The position numbers were made by a program, and so were the translations under genes. From Paramoeba atlantica (lineage: Eukaryota; Protista; Discosea): a stretch of 33,774 nt of DNA. This document shows positions 1-32,135 of the stretch, in pieces. Position 1 is the stretch's first letter, and every line of letters begins with the position of its first letter. The stretch covers positions 1 through 33,774 of the forward strand of contig CDRNVI010000118.1 in assembly GCA_977017575.1 (NCBI GenBank), read 5' to 3'. The notes beneath the pieces are model-generated. The model had not been told where the DNA came from and ran no database searches. It saw only the letters and a list, made by a program, of their open reading frames with translations.

Positions 1-1
1 C

Positions 2-319
2 ATCCCTCAGGCCGACTTTGATGCTCAACAGTTAAAGGTCTTACCTTGGCAAACCACCTCTTTATACCAAAGTACCAAAGCTTATTTTGAGTCAAAACAT
101 TGCCAAATGGTTGCTTTGGAAAGATTGTCCGATATAGATACCGTGACCGATATAGAAAGGTTCTCCGGCTATATTCGCAGTTTAGGAAGGTTCTGGATTG
201 CCCTATTTTCTAAAATTTTACAGCGACACGACCAGGTTTTTCATGTAACCGAAAAATCTCCTGAAATACATAGTCGACAAATCCCATTTAATAAAGGCTC
301 ACCTATTTGTTTTGCTTAA
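2..319 (+). CDS. DUF2064 / TIGR04282-like glycosyltransferase-family protein, C-terminal part (5' end outside window)
   Basis: Frame is open from base 2 (IPQADFDAQQLKVLPWQTTSLY...ALERLSDIDTVTDI...FNKGSPICFA*). The LPW...L.DID...D pattern is recalled from the DUF2064 family, and the gene lies upstream of the peroxidase-like gene and arsS. Family assignment is from recognition, not a search. Confidence 0.6.
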   Translation: MPQADFDAQQLKVLPWQTTSLYQSTKAYFESKHCQMVALERLSDIDTVTDIERFSGYIRSLGRFWIALFSKILQRHDQVFHVTEKSPEIHSRQIPFNKGSPICFA

Positions 320-419
320 TCACATTAATTCTTGAACCTATAAACTGGTTCTTTCCTATTATTTTTCAGAAATACACCTATAGTGCTATTTCTGTACACA
401 AACCAAAAAAGCAAAACAC

Positions 420-755
420 ATGGCAAACTCATATTACGATCCAGCGGACTTACGAAAGTTTGGAAAAATCACTGAATGGAGCGAGGAACTAGGTAACAAA
501 TTCTTTGATTATTACGGAAAGGTTTTTGAGGAAGGAGCTCTAAGTGCCCGCGAAAAATCCTTGATCGCCCTAGCTGTGGCCCATGTAGTCAAATGTCCTT
601 ATTGCATTGATGCCTATACGAAGGATGGCTTACAACGCGGAATCACTAAAGAAGAAATGATGGAAGCTGTACATGCCGGTGCTGCGATTGAAAGTGGAGC
701 TACCCTTGTACATGGGGTACAGATGATGAACAAGTACAATAAACTATCTATGTAA
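420..755 (+). CDS. AhpD/carboxymuconolactone decarboxylase-like protein (arsenosugar biosynthesis-associated peroxidase-like)
   Basis: 111 aa with GALSAREKSLIALAVAHVVKCPYCIDAY (CxxC AhpD core), directly upstream of arsS. Confidence 0.85.
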   Translation: MANSYYDPADLRKFGKITEWSEELGNKFFDYYGKVFEEGALSAREKSLIALAVAHVVKCPYCIDAYTKDGLQRGITKEEMMEAVHAGAAIESGATLVHGVQMMNKYNKLSM

Positions 756-831
756 TCACGTACCGCTGCGCTGTTGGACGTTAAAACTACTGCGTTGCCG
801 GAAATAAGATCAATTAATTCAGTTAAGTGAA

Positions 832-1920
832 ATGGAACAAAGTATATTGACCGATATTAAAAAAGCGGCAAAAAAATCATTAAAGGCACGTGAAAATGAG
901 CTTGCAGAAACCAACAAACAGTTGGATATCTTGAATGGAGGCATTTTTGCAGAGGGGGAGCTGCCCTATTTTAAAGATAAAATTGCTGAAATTGGCCATT
1001 TTCCCTTGCGCCCCAACAAATTGGAGATTCTACAAATCAATGTGGGCTATATGTGTAACCAGGTTTGCGAACATTGTCATGTGGATGCCGGACCGGACCG
1101 GAAGGAAATCATGACTCGCCAGACCATGGAGCAATGTCTGGAAGTAATTAAGAATACGGGTGCACATACTTTGGATCTTACTGGGGGTGCCCCTGAAATG
1201 AACCCAAATTTCAGATGGTTTGTGGAGGAAGCGGCAAAAGCGGGCATTCAGGATTTCATAGTCCGCTCTAATCTTACCATAATCCGGGCCAACAAAAAAT
1301 ACTATGATCTCCCCGAGTTCTTTAAAAAACATAATGTGCATGTGGTTTCGTCTATGCCACATTATACCCGAGGCAAAACGGACAAGCAGCGTGGTGATGG
1401 TGTTTTTGATAAATCCATTAAAGCTTTACAAGAGTTGAATTCCGTTGGATATGGTAGGCCGAATAGCGATTTGCGTTTGGATTTGGTTTACAACCCATCT
1501 GGAGCATTTTTACCCGGAGATCAGGCTGCCTTGGAGCAAGACTTTAAAAAAGCCTTGGATGAAGATTTCGACATTCAGTTTCACAATTTGTTTGCCATTA
1601 CCAATTTGCCCATTTCGCGCTTTCTGGATTATTTGATTGCTTCTGACAACTATGAAGACTATATGTATGCCCTGGTTGAGGCCTATAACCCTACGGCTGT
1701 TTCCAATGTAATGTGTACCAATACGATCTCCATAAGCTGGGATGGTTGGTTATACGATTGTGACTTTAACCAAATGTTGGACCTTAAGGTAGCCAGTAAG
1801 GTGAAACATATTAAGGACTACAATGAGGATGTCTTAAACCACCGCAACATCATTATATCACAACACTGTTATGGTTGTACAGCAGGCGCCGGAAGTAGTT
1901 GCCAGGGTACTGTGGCCTAA
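832..1920 (+). CDS. arsS: Radical SAM protein of the arsenosugar biosynthesis ArsS family (radical SAM + DUF3641 Cys-rich tail)
   Basis: CNQVCEHC (CxxxCxxC), DLTGGAPEMNP, YDCDFNQML and C-terminal HCYGCTAGAGSSCQG. No in-frame TGA, so this is the Cys (non-seleno) form. Confidence 0.88.
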   Translation: MEQSILTDIKKAAKKSLKARENELAETNKQLDILNGGIFAEGELPYFKDKIAEIGHFPLRPNKLEILQINVGYMCNQVCEHCHVDAGPDRKEIMTRQTMEQCLEVIKNTGAHTLDLTGGAPEMNPNFRWFVEEAAKAGIQDFIVRSNLTIIRANKKYYDLPEFFKKHNVHVVSSMPHYTRGKTDKQRGDGVFDKSIKALQELNSVGYGRPNSDLRLDLVYNPSGAFLPGDQAALEQDFKKALDEDFDIQFHNLFAITNLPISRFLDYLIASDNYEDYMYALVEAYNPTAVSNVMCTNTISISWDGWLYDCDFNQMLDLKVASKVKHIKDYNEDVLNHRNIIISQHCYGCTAGAGSSCQGTVA

Positions 1921-1975
1921 ATTAGGGTAAACTGTAGATAGTCCATCCGTATTTAAACCTTGTTATTTTACACTT

Positions 1976-2004
1976 AAACCGACCCACGGGTCGGTTTGCC
2001 TTTT
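1976..2004 (+). terminator. Probable intrinsic terminator after arsS
   Basis: Perfect inverted repeat AAACCGACCC (1976-1985) / GGGTCGGTTT (1988-1997) followed by GCCTTTT. Confidence 0.7.
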
Positions 2005-2107
2005 GCCTTCATTCCGTTTTGGGTCAATTTTTGTCATTTCACCGATTTTTCCTACAGCTACATCCGTAATTCTTTAGGTGAACCCAATTCTGAGGGAACT
2101 TTGTAAC

Positions 2108-2121
2108 AGACTTGATAGTCT
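2108..2121. promoter_or_regulatory. Candidate TetR autoregulatory operator (AGACT-N4-AGTCT)
   Basis: Dyad 24 nt upstream of the tetR start codon. Short, so the function is inferred. Confidence 0.4.
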
Positions 2122-2144
2122 AATAACCCCAAAACCCAAATCTT

Positions 2145-2762
2145 ATGGACAAGAACCTAAAAAAACGGGAAACCATGCACCGTTTGTGTGCCAAAGGCCT
2201 TGAAGTGTTCCACGAAAAAGGCTATTACAATACTAGCTTGGATGATATACTAAAAGAATTGTCTCTTTCTAAGGGTGCCTTTTACCATCATTTTAAATCC
2301 AAAGAGGACTATTTTATTAGCATTGTACAAAACTTGGTGGTGCAAAAAGTTTATGCGCTATTGGTGGAGCCGTTGAACACCCAAGAGAACCCTCTCCCCG
2401 TTATCCTGGATAGCTTAGAGCAAGCATTGGAACCAGGCAAACAAAACGAAATGGTCTATGGCTTTATGCTCAACGACTTTTTAACAGAGTTTAACAAACG
2501 AAATGCTGAAATAAGCACTTACCTGAAAGATATCATTAAGGTCTGGGAGGTAAATTTGGTTTCCTTGCTTAAAAGAGGCAAAATTGATGGCCATATAGCC
2601 CGTCATGTGGATTGTGAAGGAGTTGCCTCCTATACCATTGCTTCATACCTAGGTATGCGCACCCTTTTTATGGGCAATACCAATAGGCAGTTAAAGTATC
2701 AATATATGCAGCAGTTGAAGCAATATTTTAATTCATTAGCCATTAGACATGCTGTTGCCTAA
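2145..2762 (+). CDS. TetR/AcrR family transcriptional regulator
   Basis: N-terminal HTH: GLEVFHEKGYYNTSLDDILKELSLSKGAFYHHFKSKEDYF. Confidence 0.92.
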   Translation: MDKNLKKRETMHRLCAKGLEVFHEKGYYNTSLDDILKELSLSKGAFYHHFKSKEDYFISIVQNLVVQKVYALLVEPLNTQENPLPVILDSLEQALEPGKQNEMVYGFMLNDFLTEFNKRNAEISTYLKDIIKVWEVNLVSLLKRGKIDGHIARHVDCEGVASYTIASYLGMRTLFMGNTNRQLKYQYMQQLKQYFNSLAIRHAVA

Positions 2763-3808
2763 GCTTTTAAAACTTCTAAAAGTTTGTCCACTACCTTTTG
2801 GGGAGCTATGGATTCCATTGCGGACTGGTATCCTCCCGGAAGTTTGTTTCCATACACTGACGTTGGAATCTTTGGGTACTGTTCCCTATCGGCCATCAGG
2901 GCATTTTCTATGGGCTGATCAAAAGGGTAGAAGCCTACAAAAGGGTGGGTTACTCCCCATAATGTGACCACAGGAATTCCAAAGTTGGCTGCCATATGCG
3001 CGTTGCCACTGTCCATGGACAACATTACATCCAAATTGGAAATCAGTTGTAGTTCTTGGGAAAAATTGAGTTTCCCAGCCATGTTCAGTGTATTTTTAAA
3101 ACTGGATGCAACCGTATTCAACTGCTGAATTTCTAGTGCTCCGCCTCCAAACAACAAAATTTTATACTTATCGGTCTTACATAGAAGCGCAACCACCTCT
3201 CTCATTAGGTGTAAGGGGTACATCTTGCCCTGGTGTGCCGCGAAAGGAGCAATTCCAATCCATTTTTTACTGTCCTGCCCAACAAGTTCAACTACATTTT
3301 CTGACAATTGTTGCCGTTCAAGCAATATCGTTTCTTCCAGCTTAATGGGATACCCCAATTCTCCAAAAACATCGGCATAACGCTGAGGGGTGGTTTTGAG
3401 CTGCCGAAACTTTTTATTACTAGCTCTTGTCAATGCCTTTTTATCAGACCGCCCTTTGTTCAACTGGATGACGGGAATACCATCTAAGGCAAAGTACTTT
3501 TTTAACACTCCGCTTCTTAACACATTGTGCAGGTCTGCCACTGCGGTAAATTGGAATGTGCGGAGTTCTTTGTACAAACGCCACAACCCCACCAAGCCTC
3601 TGTGTTTGTTTTCTACATCGGCCTCAAAAACCGTAACACGATCTAACTGGGAAAAAATGGGAGAAAAGTGACCTTTGGTAAGCACTGTTAACTCCACCTT
3701 TGGGTATTTGTCCAGTACGGTTTTTATGACTGGAATGGTCATGGCCACATCTCCCATGGCAGATAGGCGAATAACAAGAATGCGGGTTGATTTACCCTTT
3801 TTGTCCAC
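2759..3808 (-). CDS. Glycosyltransferase family 9 (ADP-heptose:LPS heptosyltransferase-like)
   Basis: RILVIRLSAMGDVAM at the N-terminus and DVMLSMDSGNAHMAANFGIPVVTLWG. Confidence 0.9.
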   Translation of the reverse strand: MDKKGKSTRILVIRLSAMGDVAMTIPVIKTVLDKYPKVELTVLTKGHFSPIFSQLDRVTVFEADVENKHRGLVGLWRLYKELRTFQFTAVADLHNVLRSGVLKKYFALDGIPVIQLNKGRSDKKALTRASNKKFRQLKTTPQRYADVFGELGYPIKLEETILLERQQLSENVVELVGQDSKKWIGIAPFAAHQGKMYPLHLMREVVALLCKTDKYKILLFGGGALEIQQLNTVASSFKNTLNMAGKLNFSQELQLISNLDVMLSMDSGNAHMAANFGIPVVTLWGVTHPFVGFYPFDQPIENALMADREQYPKIPTSVYGNKLPGGYQSAMESIAPQKVVDKLLEVLKA

Positions 3809-4397
3809 GGAGAACCGGGTTTAGTTCATCGTCATTGTACATTTTCATCTGCTTATAGACTTTCATGTACTTGTCGCCAGATTCAATATCGGCCAATAAT
3901 TGATCAATTGCAGAGGACAAATCCTTCTTCTGTTCTAATAGGACAGTCAATTTTTTTTGGCAATTTTCAATGTGTTCCGAAGAAGCATCGGTACGGTTTA
4001 CCTCCTCCTGCATATGATAAATCTTTAGGGCCAGGATAGAAAGACGATCAAAGGCCCATGCCGGACTTTCTGTATTGATGGTTGCATCCTCCTTTACCTT
4101 AATGGACCTATATTTCTCCAAGAAATAGCTGTCTATATATTCTACTAAATCCGTTCTGTCCTGATTGCTGGCATCAATTTTACGTTTTAACTCAAGCGCG
4201 GCTACTGGATCAATGTCAGGGTCTCGAATGATATCCTCATAATGCCACTGCACGGTATCTATCCAGTTTTTTCGGTATAACAAGTGCTCCACCTTGTCTT
4301 TTGAGTAAGGGCTAACAAATTCTTGATTTACTTCGTCCTTAATATGATAAGTATCTATACTTTCTTGAAAGATATTAAAGGCAAATGCGCTGAACAT
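3792..4397 (-). CDS. DUF4254 domain-containing protein
   Basis: KNWIDTVQWHYEDIIRDPDI, IDASNQDRTDLVEYID and TESPAWAFDRLSILALKIYHM. Start placed at ATG 4397 (MFSAF) rather than 4484, which overlaps the upstream gene. A TATCTTTG -7 promoter-like element lies at 4416-4423 on the minus strand. Confidence 0.8.
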   Translation of the reverse strand: MFSAFAFNIFQESIDTYHIKDEVNQEFVSPYSKDKVEHLLYRKNWIDTVQWHYEDIIRDPDIDPVAALELKRKIDASNQDRTDLVEYIDSYFLEKYRSIKVKEDATINTESPAWAFDRLSILALKIYHMQEEVNRTDASSEHIENCQKKLTVLLEQKKDLSSAIDQLLADIESGDKYMKVYKQMKMYNDDELNPVLRGQKG

Positions 4398-4435
4398 AGG
4401 CAAATTAATTTCCCGCAAAGATATTGCTTTATGGT

Positions 4436-5367
4436 TTACCGATTGAGATCCAAAGCGAAAAGCAAAAACGGAATCAGTATACAAACCGCCATTACCAACT
4501 CCCTTAAACGTGTTTTTTTAATACTCTCCAAATAGTTGGTCAAGAAAACGGCCGCCGGAAAAAAAGTAATCAAAATAGTGGAAGACCCGTTGAAAGTGAA
4601 AATGCAGAGAATTATCCCGAGGACAAAAGCCAAAAACACAATCCGTAGGGGCACCAACTTTCCGCCTCCCTTCTTTCTCACTTTTAAAAAAACAAGAGAG
4701 GATACTACAAGTATCAGCGCCGTATAGATCAATAGTTTTGCAATGCCCTTTTGGACCAAAAGACTGGTAGACAAAAAATCAAGGGGGAAACGGTAATGCT
4801 GCTCAAAAAAGGACAGTTCCCCGTAGACTTTTAAAATGGTAAATGCACATATAAAAAGAGTGATACATGCAGCCATTGGTACCATCCAACTTTTTGCTGT
4901 TTTTCTATCATAAACATTGATGACCACAAACACCAGTACTAAAAAAATAAGGGCCCATTCATAAAAAAGGCTTGCCAGGCCTATTAAAAGGGAAGAGTCA
5001 AAAATCTTGTGCTTTACGTTTTTGGAGGATTTAATGGCCAGTAACCTCCAAACCGCTATCATTAAAAAAAACTGGCAAAGATGGCATTCTTATCCAATAA
5101 GGTGTCTGAAAAAGTGAGCAGTAGCAAAACAAAAAACAACATGGCATAGGAACTAAAGTCCGTTACCTTCTCAGTCTTAACAACTTGATTAATCACAAAA
5201 AGCATGAGAAGTAAAGCTCCAACTGTCAAGATTTCCAACGGTACAGCAATGGTGCTCTCGGTATTTAAAAGGTGGTGCCCAGAATAAAAGCAATAAACCA
5301 AGAATAAAAAGACGGATAAAACTATATAGTTTATTGGTTTTGTTTTTCCAAAAAAGCTTGAAATCAT
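4436..5367 (-). pseudogene. DUF6427-like membrane protein split by a one-base frameshift (or sequencing error)
   Basis: ORFs 5062-5367 and 4436-5062 join into one approx 310 aa hydrophobic protein (...NAIFASFF-L-MIAVWRLL...) if the T8 run at 5064-5071 (minus strand) is T9. Confidence 0.65.
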
Positions 5368-5387
5368 CTTAGGTTTTACTACTTTTG
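5358..5387 (+). promoter_or_regulatory. Bacteroidota sigma70-type promoter (TTG-N19-TAnnTTTG)
   Basis: TTG at 5358-5360 and TACTTTTG at 5380-5387, 19 nt before the ATG at 5407. Confidence 0.65.
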
Positions 5388-5406
5388 CAAAGTAAATATA
5401 GCCAAC

Positions 5407-5628
5407 ATGAGCAAGTTTTTTTACGGAATCGAAGACTTATTTGTAAATGTATTTTTTGCCCCTTACGATATGTTCCGCTTTATGGAAAGTTGGTGGGCCT
5501 CCAACGCTGTGAATTGGGTTTTTGCCATTATTGGTTTTGTGGCCCTGGTGTATTGGATGAAGGAGCTCAAAATTTTCAACGATAATGGAGAGGAAGACAA
5601 AAGTATTTCTTCGCACTCCTATCTGTAA
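5407..5628 (+). CDS. Small Flavobacteriaceae membrane protein (DUF6341-like)
   Basis: 73 aa, FFYGIEDLFVNVFFAPYDMFR...WWASNAVNWVF...YWMKEL...EDKSISSHSYL. Has its own promoter. Confidence 0.65.
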   Translation: MSKFFYGIEDLFVNVFFAPYDMFRFMESWWASNAVNWVFAIIGFVALVYWMKELKIFNDNGEEDKSISSHSYL

Positions 5629-5683
5629 CTTACCAATAGCTCTTTTTTTACGTCAAATTCCCATGACGGAGTAGCCTTGAACT

Positions 5684-6328
5684 TTATAGGTCAAATCCAA
5701 GGTCCTTTCTGTAGTACATACCCTCAAAATGTAGTTTTTCCAAATTTTGATAGGATTTGTCGAGGGCCTGCTTAAAATCTTCGCCAAAGGAAGTAACCGT
5801 AATCACCCTTCCTCCATTTGTTACTACTTTGTTATCTGTAGTTTTGGTTCCTGCATGGAATACCAGTGAATCCTTAATCTCCTCAATTCCTGTAATCTCC
5901 TTCCCTTTTTCATAAGCCTCTGGGTAACCTCCTGATACAGCCATAACAGTAGTAGCTGTCCTAGAATCAATTTGAAGGTTGATTTGATCTAAATTCCCAT
6001 TGGCCATGGCGGTAAGTATTTCCACTAGATCCGTCTGAACCCTTGGAATGACCACTTCGGTTTCGGGATCACCCATCCGCACATTGTATTCAATAACCTT
6101 AGGTTGATCTCCAACCTTGATCAACCCAATAAATATAAATCCAACGTAGGGCAGCTTATCCCTTTTAAGCCCTTCTACAGTAGGTTTTACAATTTGATGC
6201 TCAATCGTCTGCATAAAATCCTTATCTGCAAAAGGAACAGGGGAAATGGCTCCCATTCCGCCCGTATTGAGTCCGGTATCTCCTTCACCGATACGTTTAT
6301 AGTCTTTTGCCGTGGGCAGGATCTTATT
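5684..6328 (-). CDS. purD: Phosphoribosylamine-glycine ligase, C-terminal half only (5' half lost at the junction)
   Basis: [51 protein letters not shown] and TNGGRV. The frame runs into mitochondrial sequence above about 6328 with no start codon. Confidence 0.93.
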   Translation of the reverse strand, partial: NKILPTAKDYKRIGEGDTGLNTGGMGAISPVPFADKDFMQTIEHQIVKPTVEGLKRDKLPYVGFIFIGLIKVGDQPKVIEYNVRMGDPETEVVIPRVQTDLVEILTAMANGNLDQINLQIDSRTATTVMAVSGGYPEAYEKGKEITGIEEIKDSLVFHAGTKTTDNKVVTNGGRVITVTSFGEDFKQALDKSYQNLEKLHFEGMYYRKDLGFDL

Positions 6329-9390: not shown

Positions 9391-9464
9391 ATCCCTCTGG
9401 TCTAATTGGTTAAGACATATCACTCATAATGGTACTGATATAGGTTCAAGTCCTATGGGGGATA
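9391..9464 (+). tRNA. tRNA with CAU anticodon (elongator Met or lysidine Ile2)
   Basis: Cloverleaf, acceptor ATCCCTC/GGGGGAT, loop CT-CAT-AA. Confidence 0.85.
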
Positions 9465-9465
9465 A

Positions 9466-9537
9466 ATAGTTGTAGTGTAGTGGTTAACATATTAGTCTTC
9501 AAAACTAATGACATAGGTTCAAATCCTATCAACTGTG
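9466..9537 (+). tRNA. trnW: tRNA-Trp(UCA)
   Basis: Anticodon arm TTAGT-CT-TCA-AA-ACTAA, G73. Reads the TGA Trp codons. Confidence 0.9.
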
Positions 9538-9569
9538 TTAATTATAGATGATATAATTAAATATAATAA

Positions 9570-9641
9570 AATAGGGTGACTGAAAGGTAAAGTATTGTTT
9601 TTTGGCAGCAAATCGTGTAGGTTCGAGTCCTACTCCTAAGT
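9570..9641 (+). tRNA. trnQ: tRNA-Gln(UUG)
   Basis: TTGTT-TT-TTG-GC-AGCAA. Acceptor pairs 1 and 2 mismatched. Confidence 0.88.
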
Positions 9642-9654
9642 ATTAAAATTTTTT

Positions 9655-9727
9655 TTAAGGATAGTATAAATGGTTATTATAATTGATTGCAAATCTATAG
9701 ATATCGGTTCGAGTCCGTTTCCTAACT
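9655..9727 (+). tRNA. trnC: tRNA-Cys(GCA)
   Basis: ATTGA-TT-GCA-AA-TCTAT, U73. Acceptor pairs 1 and 3 mismatched. Confidence 0.87.
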
Positions 9728-9754
9728 TTTTTAAATTTAATATAAATATAATAA

Positions 9755-9827
9755 ATACCTATAGTTTAATTGGTTAAAACATGCATTTGATAAGTGCAAA
9801 TTGATAGTTCGAGTCTATCTGGGGTTA
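9755..9827 (+). tRNA. trnI: tRNA-Ile(GAU)
   Basis: TGCAT-TT-GAT-AA-GTGCA. Acceptor pairs 2 and 3 mismatched. Confidence 0.9.
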
Positions 9828-9836
9828 TAAATAAAA

Positions 9837-9909
9837 AAATAGTTAGCTCAATTGGTAGAGCATCGGCCTTTTAAGCTGAGGGTTATAGGTTCGAGCCCTA
9901 TACTATCTA
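9837..9909 (+). tRNA. trnK: tRNA-Lys(UUU)
   Basis: TCGGC-CT-TTT-AA-GCTGA. Acceptor pair 2 mismatched. Confidence 0.92.
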
Positions 9910-9915
9910 TAAAAA

Positions 9916-9988
9916 TATGGAATGGTGTAATAGGTTAGCACATCGAGTTGTGATTTCGATAGTATGAGTTCAAGTCTCATTTCTTACC
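9916..9988 (+). tRNA. trnH: tRNA-His(GUG)
   Basis: TCGAG-TT-GTG-AT-TTCGA, C73. Acceptor pairs 1-3 mismatched and no encoded G-1. Confidence 0.9.
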
Positions 9989-10054
9989 TAAATTAAGAAT
10001 AATAAAATTAATAAAATATATATTTTATTAAAATTTTTTTATTAATTTGTAAAG

Positions 10055-10128
10055 ATAGATGTGATGGAATTGGTAGACATATTAGTTTTAGGCACTAAAT
10101 TTTAGGGGTTCGAGTCCCCTCATCTGTA
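10055..10128 (+). tRNA. trnL: tRNA-Leu(UAG), short variable arm
   Basis: Leu-type D-arm GGAATTGGTAGAC, TTAGT-TT-TAG-GC-ACTAA, 5-nt variable region. Confidence 0.88.
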
Positions 10129-10162
10129 TTGTATGTATAAAAAAAGAAAAAATATTTTTTAT

Positions 10163-10233
10163 AAGGATGTAGTTTAAAGGTAAAATATCTATTTTGGGTG
10201 TAGACGTTATAGGTTCAAATCCTATCGTCCTGA
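10163..10233 (+). tRNA. trnP: tRNA-Pro(UGG)
   Basis: TCTAT-TT-TGG-GT-GTAGA. A1 x G72 mismatch. Confidence 0.92.
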
Positions 10234-10246
10234 TAATTATAATAAC

Positions 10247-10320
10247 AAGGAGGTAGCTTAATAGGCTAAAGCTTTAACCTGTCGAGTTAAAAGATGAGGG
10301 TTCGAATCCCTTCCTCCGCA
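10247..10320 (+). tRNA. trnD: tRNA-Asp(GUC)
   Basis: TTAAC-CT-GTC-GA-GTTAA. Acceptor pairs 1 and 2 mismatched. Confidence 0.9.
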
Positions 10321-10620
10321 TAAAATATAATAAAATATGTTTATTTTATTACTATATAATCAAGATGTTTTGTATATAAAATATAAAATATTATCTATTA
10401 TATCTATTATATCAATTTATGATAAATGTACATTTACCATATGAAATAACAGTCATAAAACATACATATTTTACTTAAAATTTTTTTAAAAAGAGAAAAA
10501 ATTATAAAATAAATAATTATAGTAATTTAAAAGATTTTATTTTTTTAATAAAATAAAAAATTAGTAAATTAATATGATTATTTATTTTAGATATATCTTA
10601 CTTTAATAATATATGATTTA

Positions 10621-10692
10621 TTTTTCTTCGTCTAATGGTTAGGACATTGCTCTTTCACAGCAGAAATAAGGGTTCAAATCCCTTAGAAATGA
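10621..10692 (+). tRNA. trnE: tRNA-Glu(UUC)
   Basis: TTGCT-CT-TTC-AC-AGCAG. Pair 2 is U x U and pair 1 is U:G. Confidence 0.9.
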
Positions 10693-10866
10693 AATTATTT
10701 TATCCGTATTAATTTAATTTAATAAAATTTTTTTGTAAATTTTTGAAATCTATTATACACTGATTTAAGTATATTATTTGTCACATATAATAAGGGGGGT
10801 TTGGGGGGTTTGTATAAGAGATAATATTTTATTTTCATATACAAAAATTTTTATTAATTATTTTTT

Positions 10867-10949
10867 AATGGTGTGATGGAATTGGTAAACATGATAGACT
10901 TAAAATCTATTGCCTTTTAGGCTTGAGGGTTCGAGTCCCTCCTCCAATA
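10867..10949 (+). tRNA. trnL: tRNA-Leu(UAA)
   Basis: ATAGA-CT-TAA-AA-TCTAT, long variable arm GCCT-TTT-AGGC. Pair 2 mismatched. Confidence 0.92.
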
Positions 10950-10967
10950 ACGATGAGTTAATTATTT

Positions 10968-11040
10968 TTTAAGATGGAGTAATAGGTTAACTCAGTGGTC
11001 TCATGAGCCACAGATGTAGGTTCGAGTCCTACTCTTCTTA
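10968..11040 (+). tRNA. trnM: tRNA-Met(CAU), probably initiator
   Basis: D-arm GAGT-AATAGGTTA-ACTC and loop CT-CAT-GA resemble mitochondrial fMet tRNAs. Acceptor pairs 1-3 mismatched. Confidence 0.82.
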
Positions 11041-11139
11041 TATAATTACGTAAATATTATTATGGATTACATTTGAATATGTAATCAATTTTGAATTTTT
11101 ATTAATTAGTAAAATATATGTATAAAAATATTTTCGAAA

Positions 11140-11379
11140 ATGGCAGGACAAGAAATTATGTTAATTTTTGCAAAAAAAGTAGGTGCTGGTTTAGCTACTA
11201 TAGGTTTAGCAGGTGCTGGAGTAGGTATAGGAATAGTTTTTGGAGCTTTTTTAATTGCTTATTCACGTAATACTACAATTAAAAACGATTTATTTGGTTA
11301 TACTTTATTAGGTTTCGCATTAACAGAAGCAATTGCTCTGTTTGCCCTAATGATGGCTTTCTTAATCTTATATACTTAA
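11140..11379 (+). CDS. atp9: ATP synthase subunit 9 (c)
   Basis: [25 protein letters not shown]...[12 protein letters not shown] (proton-binding Glu). Confidence 0.97.
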
Positions 11380-11406
11380 TCAACCTATTTTTGTTGTTTT
11401 GTATTT

Positions 11407-11480
11407 AATTGGTTAGTTTAATTGGTTAAAATTATGATCTTCTAAATCATTAGATATAGGTTCGAGTCCTATACCAATTA
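11407..11480 (+). tRNA. trnR: tRNA-Arg(UCU)
   Basis: ATGAT-CT-TCT-AA-ATCAT, fully paired acceptor AATTGGT/ACCAATT. Confidence 0.92.
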
Positions 11481-11488
11481 TAATTTTT

Positions 11489-11569
11489 TATAGTGTGGCT
11501 GAGCGGTAAAGCGGTAGACTGTAAATCTATTGTATTTATACATCGTAGGTTCGAATCCTACCACTTCCA
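11489..11569 (+). tRNA. trnY: tRNA-Tyr(GUA)
   Basis: GTAGA-CT-GTA-AA-TCTAT, long variable arm. Acceptor pairs 1-3 mismatched. Confidence 0.92.
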
Positions 11570-11629
11570 TTTGATTAAAATATATAATAATGTTGAATAA
11601 TTTTTAAACAAATCATTTTAAAATTTTTT

Positions 11630-12626
11630 TATAAATTTAAAATAGTATTAAACGGATATCTTGCCAATAATAAGTTTATAGACGTTTTAAAACGTAATGT
11701 GAAAGTAAAATAATAATAATTTTTCAATATTCACGTATCTAAAGGGAAAACCCAATTAAATTAAATAATTAAAGAATATCTAATGAATTGAATCATCTTA
11801 GTAATTAGTTAAAAAAAATAAAAATGATATTATTAGTAGTGGCGAGCGAAAATAAAATAGCTAAATTAAACAATAATATAAATAAAAAATATAATAATTT
11901 GGAATAATTAACAAAATAAGTAATAGTCTTGTTATTTTTTATTATTATTATTGGTTTTGAGTAAAATAAAAACTAAATTTGTTTGAAGATTAGAGTACCA
12001 TCTCTAAAGGCTAAAGAATTATTATTGAGCGATAGTGAAAAAGTACTGTGAAGGAAAGATGAAAAGAAATTTTTTAAAAATGTTGAAATAGATTTTGAAA
12101 TTTAATACTAAATAGCACTTTAAGCATAAATAATTATATGTTAAAAGGTACCTTTTGCATAATGGGTCAGTGAGTTAATTATTGTAGCAAAATAAAAAAT
12201 TATTAAATTTTTTAATTGTAATTAATATATTTATAGTTATAATAATTAGACCCGAAACCAAGTGATCTAGTCATGGGCAGATTGAAGTTAATTAAATATT
12301 AATGGAGGATCGAACCCGTTTATGTTGCAATATATTGGGATGACCTATGATTAGGGGTGAAAGGCTAATCAAACTTGGAGATAGCTGGTTTTCTACGAAA
12401 TCTATTTAAGTAGAGATGAAATTTAAATTTATATAAGGTAGAGCTACCATATTGGGTTGTTGAATCCATATGAACTTCAAATAAATATAAAGTAAAAATT
12501 TTAATTTCGATATATGGCGAAAAGGTTGTATATCAAGAGGGAAAGAGCCCAGATTATAAATTAAGGTTTCTAAATTAATATTAAGTTAAAAAGTATATTA
12601 TAATATTAACAATGAATAGGAGGTAG

Positions 12627-12660
<34 letters not shown>

Positions 12661-14405
12661 CAGCTCACTATTGATAGATATTTATATACAAAAATATAAC
12701 GAAAATAAATATTATACCGAAATTATAAAATATTATTTAAAATAATAATATTGGTAGTAGAACGTTTTATAAAAGAAAAAAAAAATTGTTAAATTATAAA
12801 ATTAAAATTGAATATACTGGCATAAGTAGCAAAAATAATGTTATAAACATTATCATCTAAAAATCTAAGGTTTCTAATGTCAAGATAAACTGCATTAGGT
12901 TAATCGGTCCCTAAAATGAATATGATAGTAATAATTGAAGGGTAGTTAAAGAGTTATAAGGATAACATAATATTTTTAACGTTATTAGTAGATGACAGTT
13001 TATTTTTTAAATATTTTAGGATCAAATTTTAATAAATATAGTAAAACATTGTGTGATATATTCGAATATATTGATTGAAATATTTAAAAAATAAATTCAA
13101 GAAAGAATACTAATATATAAAACCGTACTAAATCCTACACAGGAGGATTAGTAGAGAATACTAAGATGAATAATTGAATAATATCGAAGGAACTCGGCAA
13201 ATTAACTCTGTAACTTCGGGAGAAAGAGTATTTTTATATATACATTATATGTATATAAAAATGTAACAGAATAGAGGATGGCGACTGTTTAACAAAAACA
13301 CAGGACTTTGCAAAATTAATTAATGATGTATAAGGTCTGACACCTGCCCGGTGCTATAAAGGTAATTGTTATTGTTAATATATTATTTAATGTATTAGCT
13401 TTATATAGAATGAATAGTAAACGGCAGCTGTAAATATAACGGTTCGAAGGTAGCGAAATTCCTTGTCGAGTAAGTTTCGACCTTGCATGAATGGTGTAAC
13501 GACTATCCTACTGTCTCCGGTATTATATTAGCGAAATTGAATTCTCTGTGCAGATGCAGCGTATTAATAGCTAGACGGAAAGACCCTATGCACCTTTACT
13601 GCAGTTATATTTTGTTATTAAAAATTAAATTTATAGGATACAAACTAATCGTTTTAAAATTTTAATATTAGTTAATTGTTTAGATAATCTTGGAATAGTT
13701 TGAATTTAATTTTTAAAACTTAATAATTTTTTATTGACAGAATATATTTGGTAGTTTCTCTGGGGCGGAGACCTCATAAAATGTAACTGAGGTGTACAAA
13801 GGTAATTAAAATTTTATTAGAAAATTTTGGCGTGTAATGGCTAAAAATTACTTAACTGTGAGATTTACAAATCAAACAGAGATCTTTTTTATTAAAAAGG
13901 TCGGTCATAGTGATCCAATATAATTGAATGGAAAATATATTGCTCAACGGATAAAAGGTACGCTAGGGATAACAGGCTTATGACTCCGGAGAGAAGATAT
14001 CGACGGGGTTGTTTGGCACCTCGATGTCGATTGGTCACATCCTGGTTAAGAAAAATGTTCCAAGGGTAAGGCTGTTCGCCTTTTAAAGTGGCACCTGAAT
14101 TGGGTTCAGAACGTCGTGAGACAGTTCGGTTCCTATCTACTATTAATTAATTAAAATTGAAGGAATCTTATCTTAGTACGAAAGGACTGGAGAAGGAATA
14201 TCACTGGTAAATCGGTTGTAATTATAATTGCATAGTCGAGTAGCTAAATATTAATAATATAATTATTGAATTCAATCAGATATAAGAAGATTATCCTAAA
14301 ATATTTTAAAAGTATTGATTGTAAAAGATTATTACGAAATTAAGTTATGTGTGTAAGTCCTGTGAAGGATTGAGCTAAATAATTTTAAGAATCAATCTAA
14401 TTTAT
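11630..14405 (+). rRNA. rnl: Mitochondrial large subunit rRNA (ends approximate, no intron evident)
   Basis: Conserved 23S-like blocks: AGTACTGTGAAGGAAAG, GACCCGAAACC, AGCTGGTTTTC, GTAACTTCGGGAGAA, GGTAGCGAAATTCCTTGTC, ACCTCGATGTCG, GAACGTCGTGAGACAGTTCGG, AGTACGAAAGGAC. Confidence 0.95.
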
Positions 14406-14530
14406 AAAAAGAAAAAAGAAAAAAGAAAAAAAATTTCTATATAAGAAAAAATAAAATATATAATATTTTGAAAATATTATATGTAATAAAACAACAAACT
14501 TTAAATTAAAGTTTGTAATTTGTAAAACAA

Positions 14531-14603
14531 TACTTGGTAGTTTCAATGGTAAAATAATTGGCTGTTAACCAATCAGATGTAGGTTCGAATCCTGCCCAGG
14601 TCG
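14531..14603 (+). tRNA. trnN: tRNA-Asn(GUU)
   Basis: ATTGG-CT-GTT-AA-CCAAT, G73. U1 x C72 mismatch. Confidence 0.9.
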
Positions 14604-14617
14604 TTGTATAAAAATAA

Positions 14618-14706
14618 GTTTATGTGGCTGAGTGGTTTAAAGTAATCCTCTTGAAAAGGATCGTATAATTTTAATTATACCGTGGGTTCGAATCCCACCA
14701 TAATCT
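14618..14706 (+). tRNA. trnS: tRNA-Ser(UGA)
   Basis: ATCCT-CT-TGA-AA-AGGAT, long variable arm GTATAATT/AATTATAC. Pair 2 is U x U. Confidence 0.92.
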
Positions 14707-14769
14707 TAATATAAAAAAAAAGGAAAAAATTTATGTAAATTATATAATATATAATATATTATATATAAA

Positions 14770-16298
14770 TACTTGTATGTTTTATTCTGGCTTTGAGTAA
14801 ATGCTAGTAGTTCGCTTAACACATGCTAGTCAATTAAAATTTAAAATTTAAAATTAATGGCGTAAGGGTGAGTAATATATAAAAACGGGACTTATAATTA
14901 TGTTTATATTATAAACTGGTTTATAAAGATTTAGGTAGTTGGAGGTGTAATAGACTAACAAGCCGATAATTCTTAGTTGATCTTAGAAGGAGGTACAACC
15001 ACATTGGGAATGAGAAAAGGCCCAAGTTCCATTAGGAGGCAGCAGTGAGGAATATTGAACAATGAGCGAAAGCTTGATTCAGCGAAACTACCTGAATTAT
15101 GACAATTTATTGAAAAATTCTTGTTTAAGTGAGCATAATGAGGTTAAACTTAAGAATAAGCATCGACTAACTTCGTGCCAGCAGTCGCGGTGATACGGAG
15201 GATGCGGGTGTTACTCAGCATTACTGGGCGTAAAGCGTATGATAAGTGGTTTATTTTTTAATAATATAATTTTAAAGGCGTTATTAGTAATAATGAATAA
15301 ATTATATATTAGTAAACTAAGAGTATTATTCAGATATATAGTATTCATAGAGGAAAGGTGAAATTTTATGATACTATGGAGACTATCAGAAGGTGAAAGC
15401 TATATATTAGATTTATACTGACACTAAAGTACGAAGGTATGGGTATCAAAGAGGATTAGAGACCCTTGTAGTCCATACAGACAACGATGGATGCTAACTG
15501 TAGGAAATATTTTTGTGGTTTAGCTAACGCGTAAGCATCCCGCCTGGGGAGTATGATCGCAAGATTTGAACTCAAAGAAAGTGGCTGAGATTTGGTACGA
15601 ACGGTGGAACATGTGGTTTAATCTGATATAACGCATAAAATCTTACCAATTCTAGATTGAAAAAAATTATAATAAATATAGTAAACTTTATATAATTTTT
15701 TTAAGCAGGTGTCGCATGGCTGTCGTCAGCTCGTGTAGTGATATGTATGGTTAGGTCCTGTAACGAGTGTAATCCTTACAATATAATAAAATATATGATA
15801 TATTATTATATTATTATATGTTATATTATTATATGTTATATTATTATATTTTATTATATTGTATTATTAATTATATATTAAATGAAATAGAGGAGGACGT
15901 CAAGTAGGTATGGCCCTGATGAATTGGGCTACACACGTGTTACAAAAATAATTACAAAAAAAAAATAAATTGTGAAATTTATTTAAATTATAAAGATTAT
16001 TATAGTTCGGATTATTTTTTGAAAATAAAAATATGAAGTTGAAATCGTCAGTAATCGAAAATTAGAATGTTTCGGTGAAATGGGATCCAAATCTAGTACA
16101 CACTGCCCGTCACGCCAAGAAAGTTGTTAATATTGGAAAAATTATAATTAATAATTTATATTTATTAATTATTTTTAATCTATTGGAGATAATTAATTTT
16201 TAATAAAATATTATTAATTATTTAATTTGAATGTATTGATAGTAATCAGGGTGAAGTCGTAACATGGTAGTGGTAGGGGAACCTGCCGCTGGATGGAA
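14770..16298 (+). rRNA. rns: Mitochondrial small subunit rRNA (ends approximate)
   Basis: CTTAACACATGC, GGAGGCAGCAGT, GTGCCAGCAGTCGCGGT, GGATTAGAGACCC, CATGGCTGTCGTCAGCTCGTG and GAAGTCGTAACATGG. No anti-Shine-Dalgarno CCTCC at the 3' end. Confidence 0.95.
15806..15850 (+). repeat. Three tandem copies of the 15-mer TTATATTATTATATG inside rns
   Basis: Copies at 15806-15820, 15821-15835 and 15836-15850 (last with a G>T change). Confidence 0.85.
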
Positions 16299-16299
16299 A

Positions 16300-16410
16300 A
16301 TAAATTTATATTTTTTTAAAGGTAAGCTTATCGAACCCCTTTAAAATATTATATATTAAATTATATTCTCGTAAAAATTTTTTATAAGAGTGTATAATTT
16401 ATATTAATAC
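16300..16410 (+). ncRNA. Candidate highly AT-rich mitochondrial 5S rRNA
   Basis: Immediately after rns: 9-bp helix 16314-16322/16338-16346 closing a loop with TCGAAC, and a second helix 16360-16370/16388-16398. Folded by eye only. Confidence 0.3.
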
Positions 16411-16423
16411 AAATCATATTTTA

Positions 16424-16512
16424 GGTGAGTTGACCGAGTGGTTGAAGGTGTCGATCTGCTAAATCGATATATTATTCATATAATATCATGGGTTCGAATC
16501 CCATACTTACCT
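16424..16512 (+). tRNA. trnS: tRNA-Ser(GCU)
   Basis: TCGAT-CT-GCT-AA-ATCGA, long variable arm, acceptor fully paired. Confidence 0.92.
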
Positions 16513-16545
16513 TATAAAAAAATAATTTGTAATTAAAAAAAGTTT

Positions 16546-16618
16546 TTGGGGGTAGCTCAGTAGGTAGAGCGAAAGCCTGAAAAGCTTTAGGTCATTGGTT
16601 CAAACCCAATTCTCCACA
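16546..16618 (+). tRNA. trnF: tRNA-Phe(GAA)
   Basis: AAAGC-CT-GAA-AA-GCTTT, A73. U1 x C72 mismatch. Confidence 0.92.
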
Positions 16619-31631: not shown

Positions 31632-32135
31632 ATGAATAAAATTTTTAATTTTATAATTTTTTATATTTCTATATTATTTTTAGTTAATATGTTTTCAAAT
31701 CATTTATTTTTTTTTAATTCTGTTGGTAATTTATTAATTATAATTATATTATTAATTATATCTTTATTTACTTTTTATATTTCTTCGTTAAAAAGTAATT
31801 TCTTAATTATAAAAAAAAATGAAATATATAAACAATATTATTTAAAATTATTAAAACTATATTATATTTTTTATTTATATAAAAATATAATATTTCAAAA
31901 TATTTTAATATCTACATTTCAAAATTATTATTTTAAATTTATAATTTTATTTTATAATATTAATTTAAATATATTATTAAATTCTATATCAAATTTATAT
32001 AGTTATTTATATAATAATTTTTTAAATACTTTTTATATTAATAATTATTTTATATTTAGTATTAAATTTAAATTATTAAATCAAATAAACTATAAAAATT
32101 TTATTTTTAAAAAATATTTTACTATAAAAAAATAA
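31632..32135 (+). CDS. Membrane protein, probable ATP synthase subunit 4 (b / orf25-like)
   Basis: 167 aa with two N-terminal hydrophobic segments and a polar tail. Size and topology fit atp4 but no diagnostic motif was recognised. Confidence 0.4.
   Translation: MNKIFNFIIFYISILFLVNMFSNHLFFFNSVGNLLIIIILLIISLFTFYISSLKSNFLIIKKNEIYKQYYLKLLKLYYIFYLYKNIIFQNILISTFQNYYFKFIILFYNINLNILLNSISNLYSYLYNNFLNTFYINNYFIFSIKFKLLNQINYKNFIFKKYFTIKK

Follow-up and report, generated by a model that had tools for sequence, protein, structure and literature searches.

Editing of mitochondrial tRNAs at the 5' end of the acceptor stem has been proven in Acanthamoeba, Dictyostelium, Polysphondylium, Physarum and the chytrids (PMC4284800). 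In Dictyostelium the polymerase that repairs the 5' ends is DdiTLP3, a Thg1-like protein (TLP), while a second protein, DdiTLP2, adds the mitochondrial G−1 opposite C73 (PMC6471195; PMC5041481). The nuclease that acts on the 5' end has not yet been identified in any species (PMC4284800; PMC6471195), and the editing of G·U pairs varies between species (PMC4284800). Here we describe the mitochondrial tRNA genes on a 33,774-nucleotide stretch of DNA from Paramoeba atlantica (hereafter the window, which is the whole of contig C118), and show that the pattern of unpaired bases in their acceptor stems points to editing of exactly this kind.

The window contains 19 tRNA genes, all on the + strand between positions 9391 and 16619, and ARAGORN and Rfam agree on every one of them. 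In each gene the seven bases that precede U8 were read as the 5' acceptor strand and the seven that follow the T stem as the 3' strand, with the register of the resulting 7-bp stems set both by hand and by an automatic rule. Read in this way, 24 of the 57 pairs at positions 1–3 are mismatched but only one of the 76 pairs at positions 4–7 (Fisher p = 8e-10). Fourteen of the 19 tRNAs, with 14 anticodons, are affected, so that the mismatches extend over a broad range of tRNA species. Nineteen flavobacterial tRNAs served as a control, and the same rule returned no mismatches from them at all (0/57 and 0/76).

A preliminary description of this DNA had listed mismatches in pairs 1–3 of 14 tRNAs, and each item on that list was reproduced here, as was its statement that pairs 4–7 are paired throughout except for one U-U in tRNA-Leu(UAA), which we place at pair 6. 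Since the 12 kb of mitochondrial DNA that lies outside the window holds no tRNA, RNase P RNA or 5S rRNA gene, the 19 tRNAs are the complete mitochondrial set, and the earlier wording that the signature is genome-wide is a fair one. A check of gene boundaries also left the mismatches in place, since both programs find the same genes and the register follows from U8 and the T stem. The Rfam local alignments omit the ends of tRNA-His, tRNA-Tyr, tRNA-Met2 and tRNA-Gln, as unpaired ends would cause. For tRNA-Cys and tRNA-His, ARAGORN drew registers with a bulge and an inner mismatch; we dropped these in favor of the canonical U8 register, which removes both irregularities.

The two strands of the mismatched pairs differ strongly in composition. 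Every one of the 24 mismatched 5' bases is an A or a T, and their partners on the 3' strand are G or C in 13 instances. Over all 19 tRNAs the G+C content is 14% at 5' positions 1–3 versus 42% at 3' positions 70–72; it is ~52% on both strands of pairs 4–7 and ~20% in the mitochondrial DNA overall. Judged by composition, positions 1–3 resemble neutral sequence on the 5' strand, unlike the bases opposite them, and it is the 5' strand that looks like the replaced side, with the 3' strand as template. Templating from the 3' strand would yield G1 in the tRNAs for Tyr, Cys, Phe, Asn, Asp and His, and C1 in those for Pro and Gln.

The same pattern is present in three related mitochondrial DNAs, which we retrieved through their atp9 genes and refer to as L111, L112 and L113. 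The closest of these, L111, shares the gene order atp9-R-Y-rnl-N-S with the window and has mismatches at 7 of 12 pairs in positions 1–3 and at none of 16 in positions 4–7. The corresponding counts are 17/51 and 0/68 in L113 and 8/21 and 0/28 in L112. When the window is compared with L113, 23 of 60 bases per strand differ in pairs 4–7 and yet there are no mismatches in either genome, and the changes there are therefore compensatory; in pairs 1–3 of the same two genomes, 29/45 and 25/45 bases differ without compensation. Compared with L111, 8 of 12 bases per strand differ in pairs 1–3, versus 0 and 1 of 16 in pairs 4–7. We conclude from the relatives that pairing at the level of the gene is selected only from pair 4 inwards, and that both strands of pairs 1–3 drift. 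L111 is an 8.75 kb contig (JAANSU012558790.1) in a very fragmented NCBI assembly (GCA_024449705.1), with an atp9 gene 89% identical to the one described here, and its likely source is a contaminant or an associate of the organism that was sequenced.

Taken together, the position of the mismatches, the asymmetry in base composition between the strands, the confinement of compensatory change to pairs 4–7, the behavior of the relatives and the amoebozoan lineage argue strongly for 5' tRNA editing as a process, whatever the enzyme. The fuller reading, to which we assign a high probability, is Acanthamoeba-type editing by a nucleus-encoded polymerase of the Thg1 superfamily, taken to be a TLP by analogy. 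The tRNA genes would be transcribed with 5' ends that are unable to pair with the 3' acceptor strand, and the leader and trailer would then be taken off. A nuclease would strip up to three nucleotides from the 5' end, after which the nucleus-encoded polymerase, working in the 3'-to-5' direction, would rebuild the end by copying positions 72, 71 and 70, leaving Watson-Crick pairs. The rebuilding enzyme may be a TLP by analogy with DdiTLP3 of Dictyostelium. The repair would exchange 24 or more nucleotides across 14 tRNAs, and in tRNA-His one more templated step, opposite C73, would supply G−1.

Three other accounts of the mismatches need to be weighed against 5' editing. Since the contig is chimeric, with bacterial DNA at positions 1–6327, and mitochondrial contigs are highly redundant in the assembly, an artefact might be suspected: the gene boundaries could be wrong, the long reads could contain errors, or the sequences could be defunct copies of mitochondrial DNA in the nucleus. 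We give this a negligible chance, since the two programs agree, the T stem and U8 define the register, the bacterial control is free of mismatches, and there are no other tRNAs in the mitochondrial DNA, which is otherwise intact and gene-dense. In addition, the 7.25-kb stretch that carries the tRNAs recurs with ~100% identity in ~19 other contigs of the assembly, and read errors are therefore excluded.

That the acceptor ends simply remain frayed and function as they are, the mature sequence being that of the gene, is a very unlikely reading, even though the case for editing is built on the genes and some mitochondria do tolerate aberrant tRNAs. It would leave tRNA-His, tRNA-Met2 and tRNA-Tyr with only four paired acceptor positions, it does not fit with compensatory change that keeps pairs 4–7 and not pairs 1–3, and a G+C content of 42% at positions 70–72, in DNA of ~20% G+C, argues that these bases are used. 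Moreover, mature tRNAs from Acanthamoeba genes with the same pattern have been sequenced and are edited, and similar edits occur in other lineages (PMC4284800). Mismatches alone do not show which strand is replaced, and editing could in principle run the other way, with the 5' strand serving as template for a new 3' strand, a process found in some animal mitochondria. The one-sided decay to A/T (24/24 bases, with 14% versus 42% G+C) and the absence of any overlap between neighboring tRNA genes, which lie at least 1 nucleotide apart, make 3'-side editing extremely unlikely. Copying of the 5' side would also give ends made up wholly of A and U, whereas copying of the 3' side gives ends with G1 or C1. 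A C1-G72 pair in tRNA-Pro and a G1 in tRNA-His are usual for those tRNAs.

Which enzyme would carry out 5' editing in this amoeba has to be considered in light of what the assembly contains. Searches with Rpb2 and Rpb1 returned three paralogues, each present as two copies with equal scores and intron-free frames, and all from one eukaryote only; the genes lie on contigs C34, C69, C15, C53, C44, C66, C54, C99, C70, C47 and C64, and one bacterial RNA polymerase copy lies on C89. The three Rpb2 loci that we retrieved have 44–54% G+C. No Rpb1/Rpb2 set of a second eukaryote was found in the assembly, the bulk of which is a single kinetoplastid-like genome present as two haplotypes. With a single eukaryotic Rpb1/Rpb2 set in hand, we conclude that the nuclear genome of the amoeba is largely absent, or at best thinly represented.

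The assembly contains one Thg1-family gene (G000:C151, ~44055–45456, minus strand), situated on a 168-kb AT-rich contig of 32–38% G+C. Searched exon by exon rather than as a joined protein, it matches PF04446 (Thg1) in three exons, which are separated by two GT-AG introns, and PF14413 (Thg1C) at 1.6e-45. The translation of exon 3 carries HINNLYN, a eukaryote-specific Thg1 motif that reads the anticodon (PMC6471195). The best relative of known structure is human THG1L (7e-57), yeast and Candida Thg1 also match, and no TLP chain does. By these features of its sequence the gene is a true eukaryotic Thg1 and not a TLP. A search of the genome with the exon 3 piece revealed no paralogue, no model in NCBIfam matched the Thg1 piece, and a word-index protein search with a bacterial TLP returned only near-identical Bacteroidota proteins. 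Thg1 is not known from kinetoplastids, and introns are almost absent from them; we therefore presume that the gene belongs to the amoeba. The presence of this Thg1-superfamily gene counts in favor of the reading that we prefer.

Several points weigh against the reading that we prefer. All of its support is drawn from gene sequences, from which the RNA-level steps and the enzymes are deduced. The only Thg1-family member that we found is of the true Thg1 type, and its protein starts like a cytosolic Thg1; the in-frame sequence upstream is of low complexity and rich in acidic residues and is therefore unlike a mitochondrial leader. No TLP was detected in the assembly, from which the host nuclear genome is mostly missing, with Pfam Thg1 (E up to 10), Pfam Thg1C, a Bacteroidota TLP from L109 or a profile of 82 diverse TLPs. 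Because so much of the nuclear genome is absent this blank is weak evidence, and we dropped a real absence of TLP from the amoeba as a reading after Rpb1 and Rpb2 showed the genes of only one eukaryote. Finally, 3' positions 70–72 evolve fast, 8 of 12 differing from L111. The expected identity bases that the preliminary description saw restored by 3' templating (Tyr GGA, Cys G1, Phe G1, Pro C1 and His G1) were reproduced here but, given this fast change, are not conserved in relatives; tRNA-Tyr of L111, for instance, would become A1 A2 C3 as opposed to G1 G2 A3 in the window. The same description had put both the editing and the addition of G−1 to tRNA-His down to one nucleus-encoded TLP system. 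Its statement that G−1 is unencoded stands, and both of its enzyme assignments are made by analogy. As for the Thg1 or TLP gene with a mitochondrial targeting signal that the description proposed to look for, our search of an assembly from which most of the host nuclear genome is missing yielded one true Thg1 with no evident leader and no TLP.

It is conceivable that the same 5' editing takes place with a polymerase other than a TLP, in which case a true Thg1 or an unrelated enzyme would rebuild the ends and add G−1. In favor of this, all of the Thg1, Thg1C and TLP queries led to only one Thg1-family gene, and human Thg1 is reported to add G−1, the mitochondrial tRNA-His having a C opposite G−1 (PMC8127990). 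We nevertheless regard it as unlikely: a TLP gene could simply be missing along with most of the host nuclear genome, Thg1 enzymes with HINNLYN rely on the His anticodon, while in editing any tRNA has to be accepted as a substrate (PMC6471195), and the only repair enzyme demonstrated is a TLP, in Dictyostelium only (PMC4284800; PMC6471195). A more specific version, in which the lineage has no TLP and its single true Thg1 would perform both mitochondrial G−1 addition and the 5' repair of 14 tRNAs, has just a slim chance of being correct. If true, it would be the reverse of the situation in Acanthamoeba, which has TLPs only.

The individual genes, all of them on the + strand, vary in the extent of mismatch. 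All three outer pairs are mismatched in tRNA-His(GUG) at 9916–9988 (U1·C72, A2·A71 and U3·U70; predicted to become G1 U2 A3; Rfam match over model positions 5–66), in tRNA-Met2(CAU) at 10968–11040 (U1·U72, U2·U71 and U3·C70; predicted A1 A2 G3; model positions 4–67) and in tRNA-Tyr(GUA) at 11489–11569 (U1·C72, A2·C71 and U3·U70; predicted G1 G2 A3; model positions 4–67). The base at −1 of tRNA-His (position 9915) is an A, and G−1 is therefore not encoded; its discriminator, C73, is the sole C73 among the 19 tRNAs. Two pairs are mismatched in tRNA-Gln(UUG) at 9570–9641 (A1·G72 and A2·A71; predicted A1 to C and A2 to U; Rfam match over model positions 3–68), in tRNA-Cys(GCA) at 9655–9727 (in the canonical U8 register U1·C72 and A3·A70; predicted U1 to G and A3 to U), in tRNA-Ile(GAU) at 9755–9827 (U2·U71 and A3·G70; predicted U2 to A and A3 to C) and in tRNA-Asp(GUC) at 10247–10320 (A1·C72 and A2·G71; predicted G1 C2).

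A single outer mismatch is present in tRNA-Lys(UUU) at 9837–9909 (A2·C71; predicted A2 to G), tRNA-Pro(UGG) at 10163–10233 (A1·G72, which also occurs in the relative L113; predicted A1 to C), tRNA-Glu(UUC) at 10621–10692 (U2·U71, beside a U1·G72 wobble; predicted U2 to A), tRNA-Leu(UAA) at 10867–10949 (A2·A71; predicted A2 to U), tRNA-Asn(GUU) at 14531–14603 (U1·C72; predicted U1 to G), tRNA-Ser(UGA) at 14618–14706 (U2·U71; predicted U2 to A) and tRNA-Phe(GAA) at 16546–16618 (U1·C72; predicted U1 to G). The only inner mismatch of the set, U6·U67, is that of tRNA-Leu(UAA). No mismatch occurs in tRNA-Trp(UCA) at 9466–9537, which reads UGA and has a U2·G71 wobble, in tRNA-Leu(UAG) at 10055–10128, also with a U2·G71 wobble, or in tRNA-Ser(GCU) at 16424–16512. 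tRNA-Arg(UCU) at 11407–11480 is fully paired, while its orthologue in L111 is mismatched at pairs 1, 2 and 3. Pairs 1–7 are likewise free of mismatch in tRNA-Met1(CAU) at 9391–9464. This tRNA has C4-G69 and C5-G68, which we take to be marks of a lysidine-type tRNA-Ile; it may be such a tRNA, reading AUA, and tRNA-Met2(CAU) would then be the sole methionine tRNA. Three AT-rich spacers between tRNA genes (9990–10048, 10384–10473 and 10505–10589) match their own reverse complement at 77–84% and could form hairpins.

The contig on which these genes lie consists of two unrelated parts that meet at 6327/6328. Positions 1–6327 are flavobacterial DNA of ~41% G+C and include a cut-off purD; the open reading frame (ORF) at 832–1920 has 92–93% amino-acid identity to Flavobacteriaceae of the Flagellimonas/Muricauda type. 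Positions 6328–33774 are mitochondrial and AT-rich, with G+C locally down to 10%, and every gene in this part is on the + strand. The bacterial piece abuts the 3' part of mitochondrial cox2 in a chimeric join; in other contigs the same mitochondrial sequence runs on upstream into mitochondrial genes. Joining the window to contig C114 gives a mitochondrial unit of ~39.4 kb (window 6328–33774 plus C114:28237–40212). The first 11.2 kb of C114 (C114:1–11261) are non-mitochondrial DNA of 35–40% G+C with a tRNA-Ser(CGA), which suggests further chimeric joins, and the mitochondrial DNA as a whole is spread over ~20 redundant and permuted contigs (C95, C108–C135 and C221).

The cox1 gene has 13 in-frame TGA codons, and in-frame TGA is found in other genes as well; together with the tRNA that has a UCA anticodon, the cox1 codons indicate that UGA is read as tryptophan. 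Mitochondrial proteins interrupted by TGA were accordingly searched as stop-free pieces. Genes for the tRNAs of Ala, Gly, Thr and Val are missing from the mitochondrial DNA (window 6328–33774 plus C114:28237–40212), and neither an RNase P RNA nor a 5S rRNA gene was found anywhere along it; the functions of these absent genes must be imported. The ATP6 piece matches Paramoeba aparasomata at 68% identity and has metagenomic relatives at 99, 85 and 83% identity, and the order cob, ORF of ~170 codons, nad3 parallels that given in the P. pemaquidensis supplement. On this sequence evidence the DNA is mitochondrial DNA from an amoeba of the Paramoeba family (Amoebozoa, Dactylopodida). The ORF between cob and nad3 (31632–32135, 167 codons) parallels 'orf171' of P. 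pemaquidensis.

The process proposed here is already well known in Amoebozoa and chytrids, and what we describe is a new example of it. A literature search found no report of 5' tRNA editing in Paramoeba or Neoparamoeba, and the genome paper on P. pemaquidensis, with its supplement, does not mention tRNA editing (PMC5601477). Our finding would thus add the Paramoeba family, whose members include pathogens of fish gills as well as hosts of the Perkinsela endosymbiont, to the groups in which mitochondrial 5' tRNA editing is known. Comparison with the relatives illustrates how a repair system may allow drift on either strand of pairs 1–3, with compensatory selection acting on pairs 4–7. The finding leaves the known mechanism as it was, with regard both to the 5' nuclease and to which polymerase acts in this lineage.

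Among the known systems with which these genes can be compared are the chytrids, an unrelated lineage whose mitochondrial DNAs encode far fewer tRNAs. Their mismatches have the same positional signature, and the same two-step mechanism has been proposed for them (Spizellomyces and others; Laforest et al. 2004, in PMC4284800). Within the family itself, the mitochondrial DNA of P. pemaquidensis (KX611830; PMC5601477, supplementary note 1.5) is, like the one described here, AT-rich with nearly all genes on one strand, and it too has an ORF of ~170 codons between cob and nad3 (PMC5601477). It measures 48.5 kb, has 20 tRNAs including tRNA-Ala, and carries a duplicated cob (PMC5601477), in contrast to ~39.4 kb and 19 tRNAs here, among which tRNA-Ala is lacking, and a single cob in the window. 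Dictyostelium discoideum resembles our case in its mitochondrial tRNA-His with C73 and no encoded G−1, in its several tRNAs with 5' mismatches and in its nuclear true Thg1; it differs in having DdiTLP2 and DdiTLP3, where we found no TLP gene. In Acanthamoeba castellanii (Lonergan and Gray 1993, in PMC4284800) mismatches are restricted to acceptor pairs 1–3, just as they are here, and 12 of 15 tRNAs are affected compared with 14 of 19. Both organisms are Amoebozoa, although ours belongs to the Dactylopodida/Paramoebidae, and the pattern that we know from genes alone is documented there by sequenced mature tRNAs. Acanthamoeba has two TLPs and no Thg1, whereas only a true Thg1 was seen here, in an assembly largely without the host nuclear genome. 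In Acanthamoeba mitochondria, as in those described here, UGA encodes tryptophan and the genes lie on one strand.

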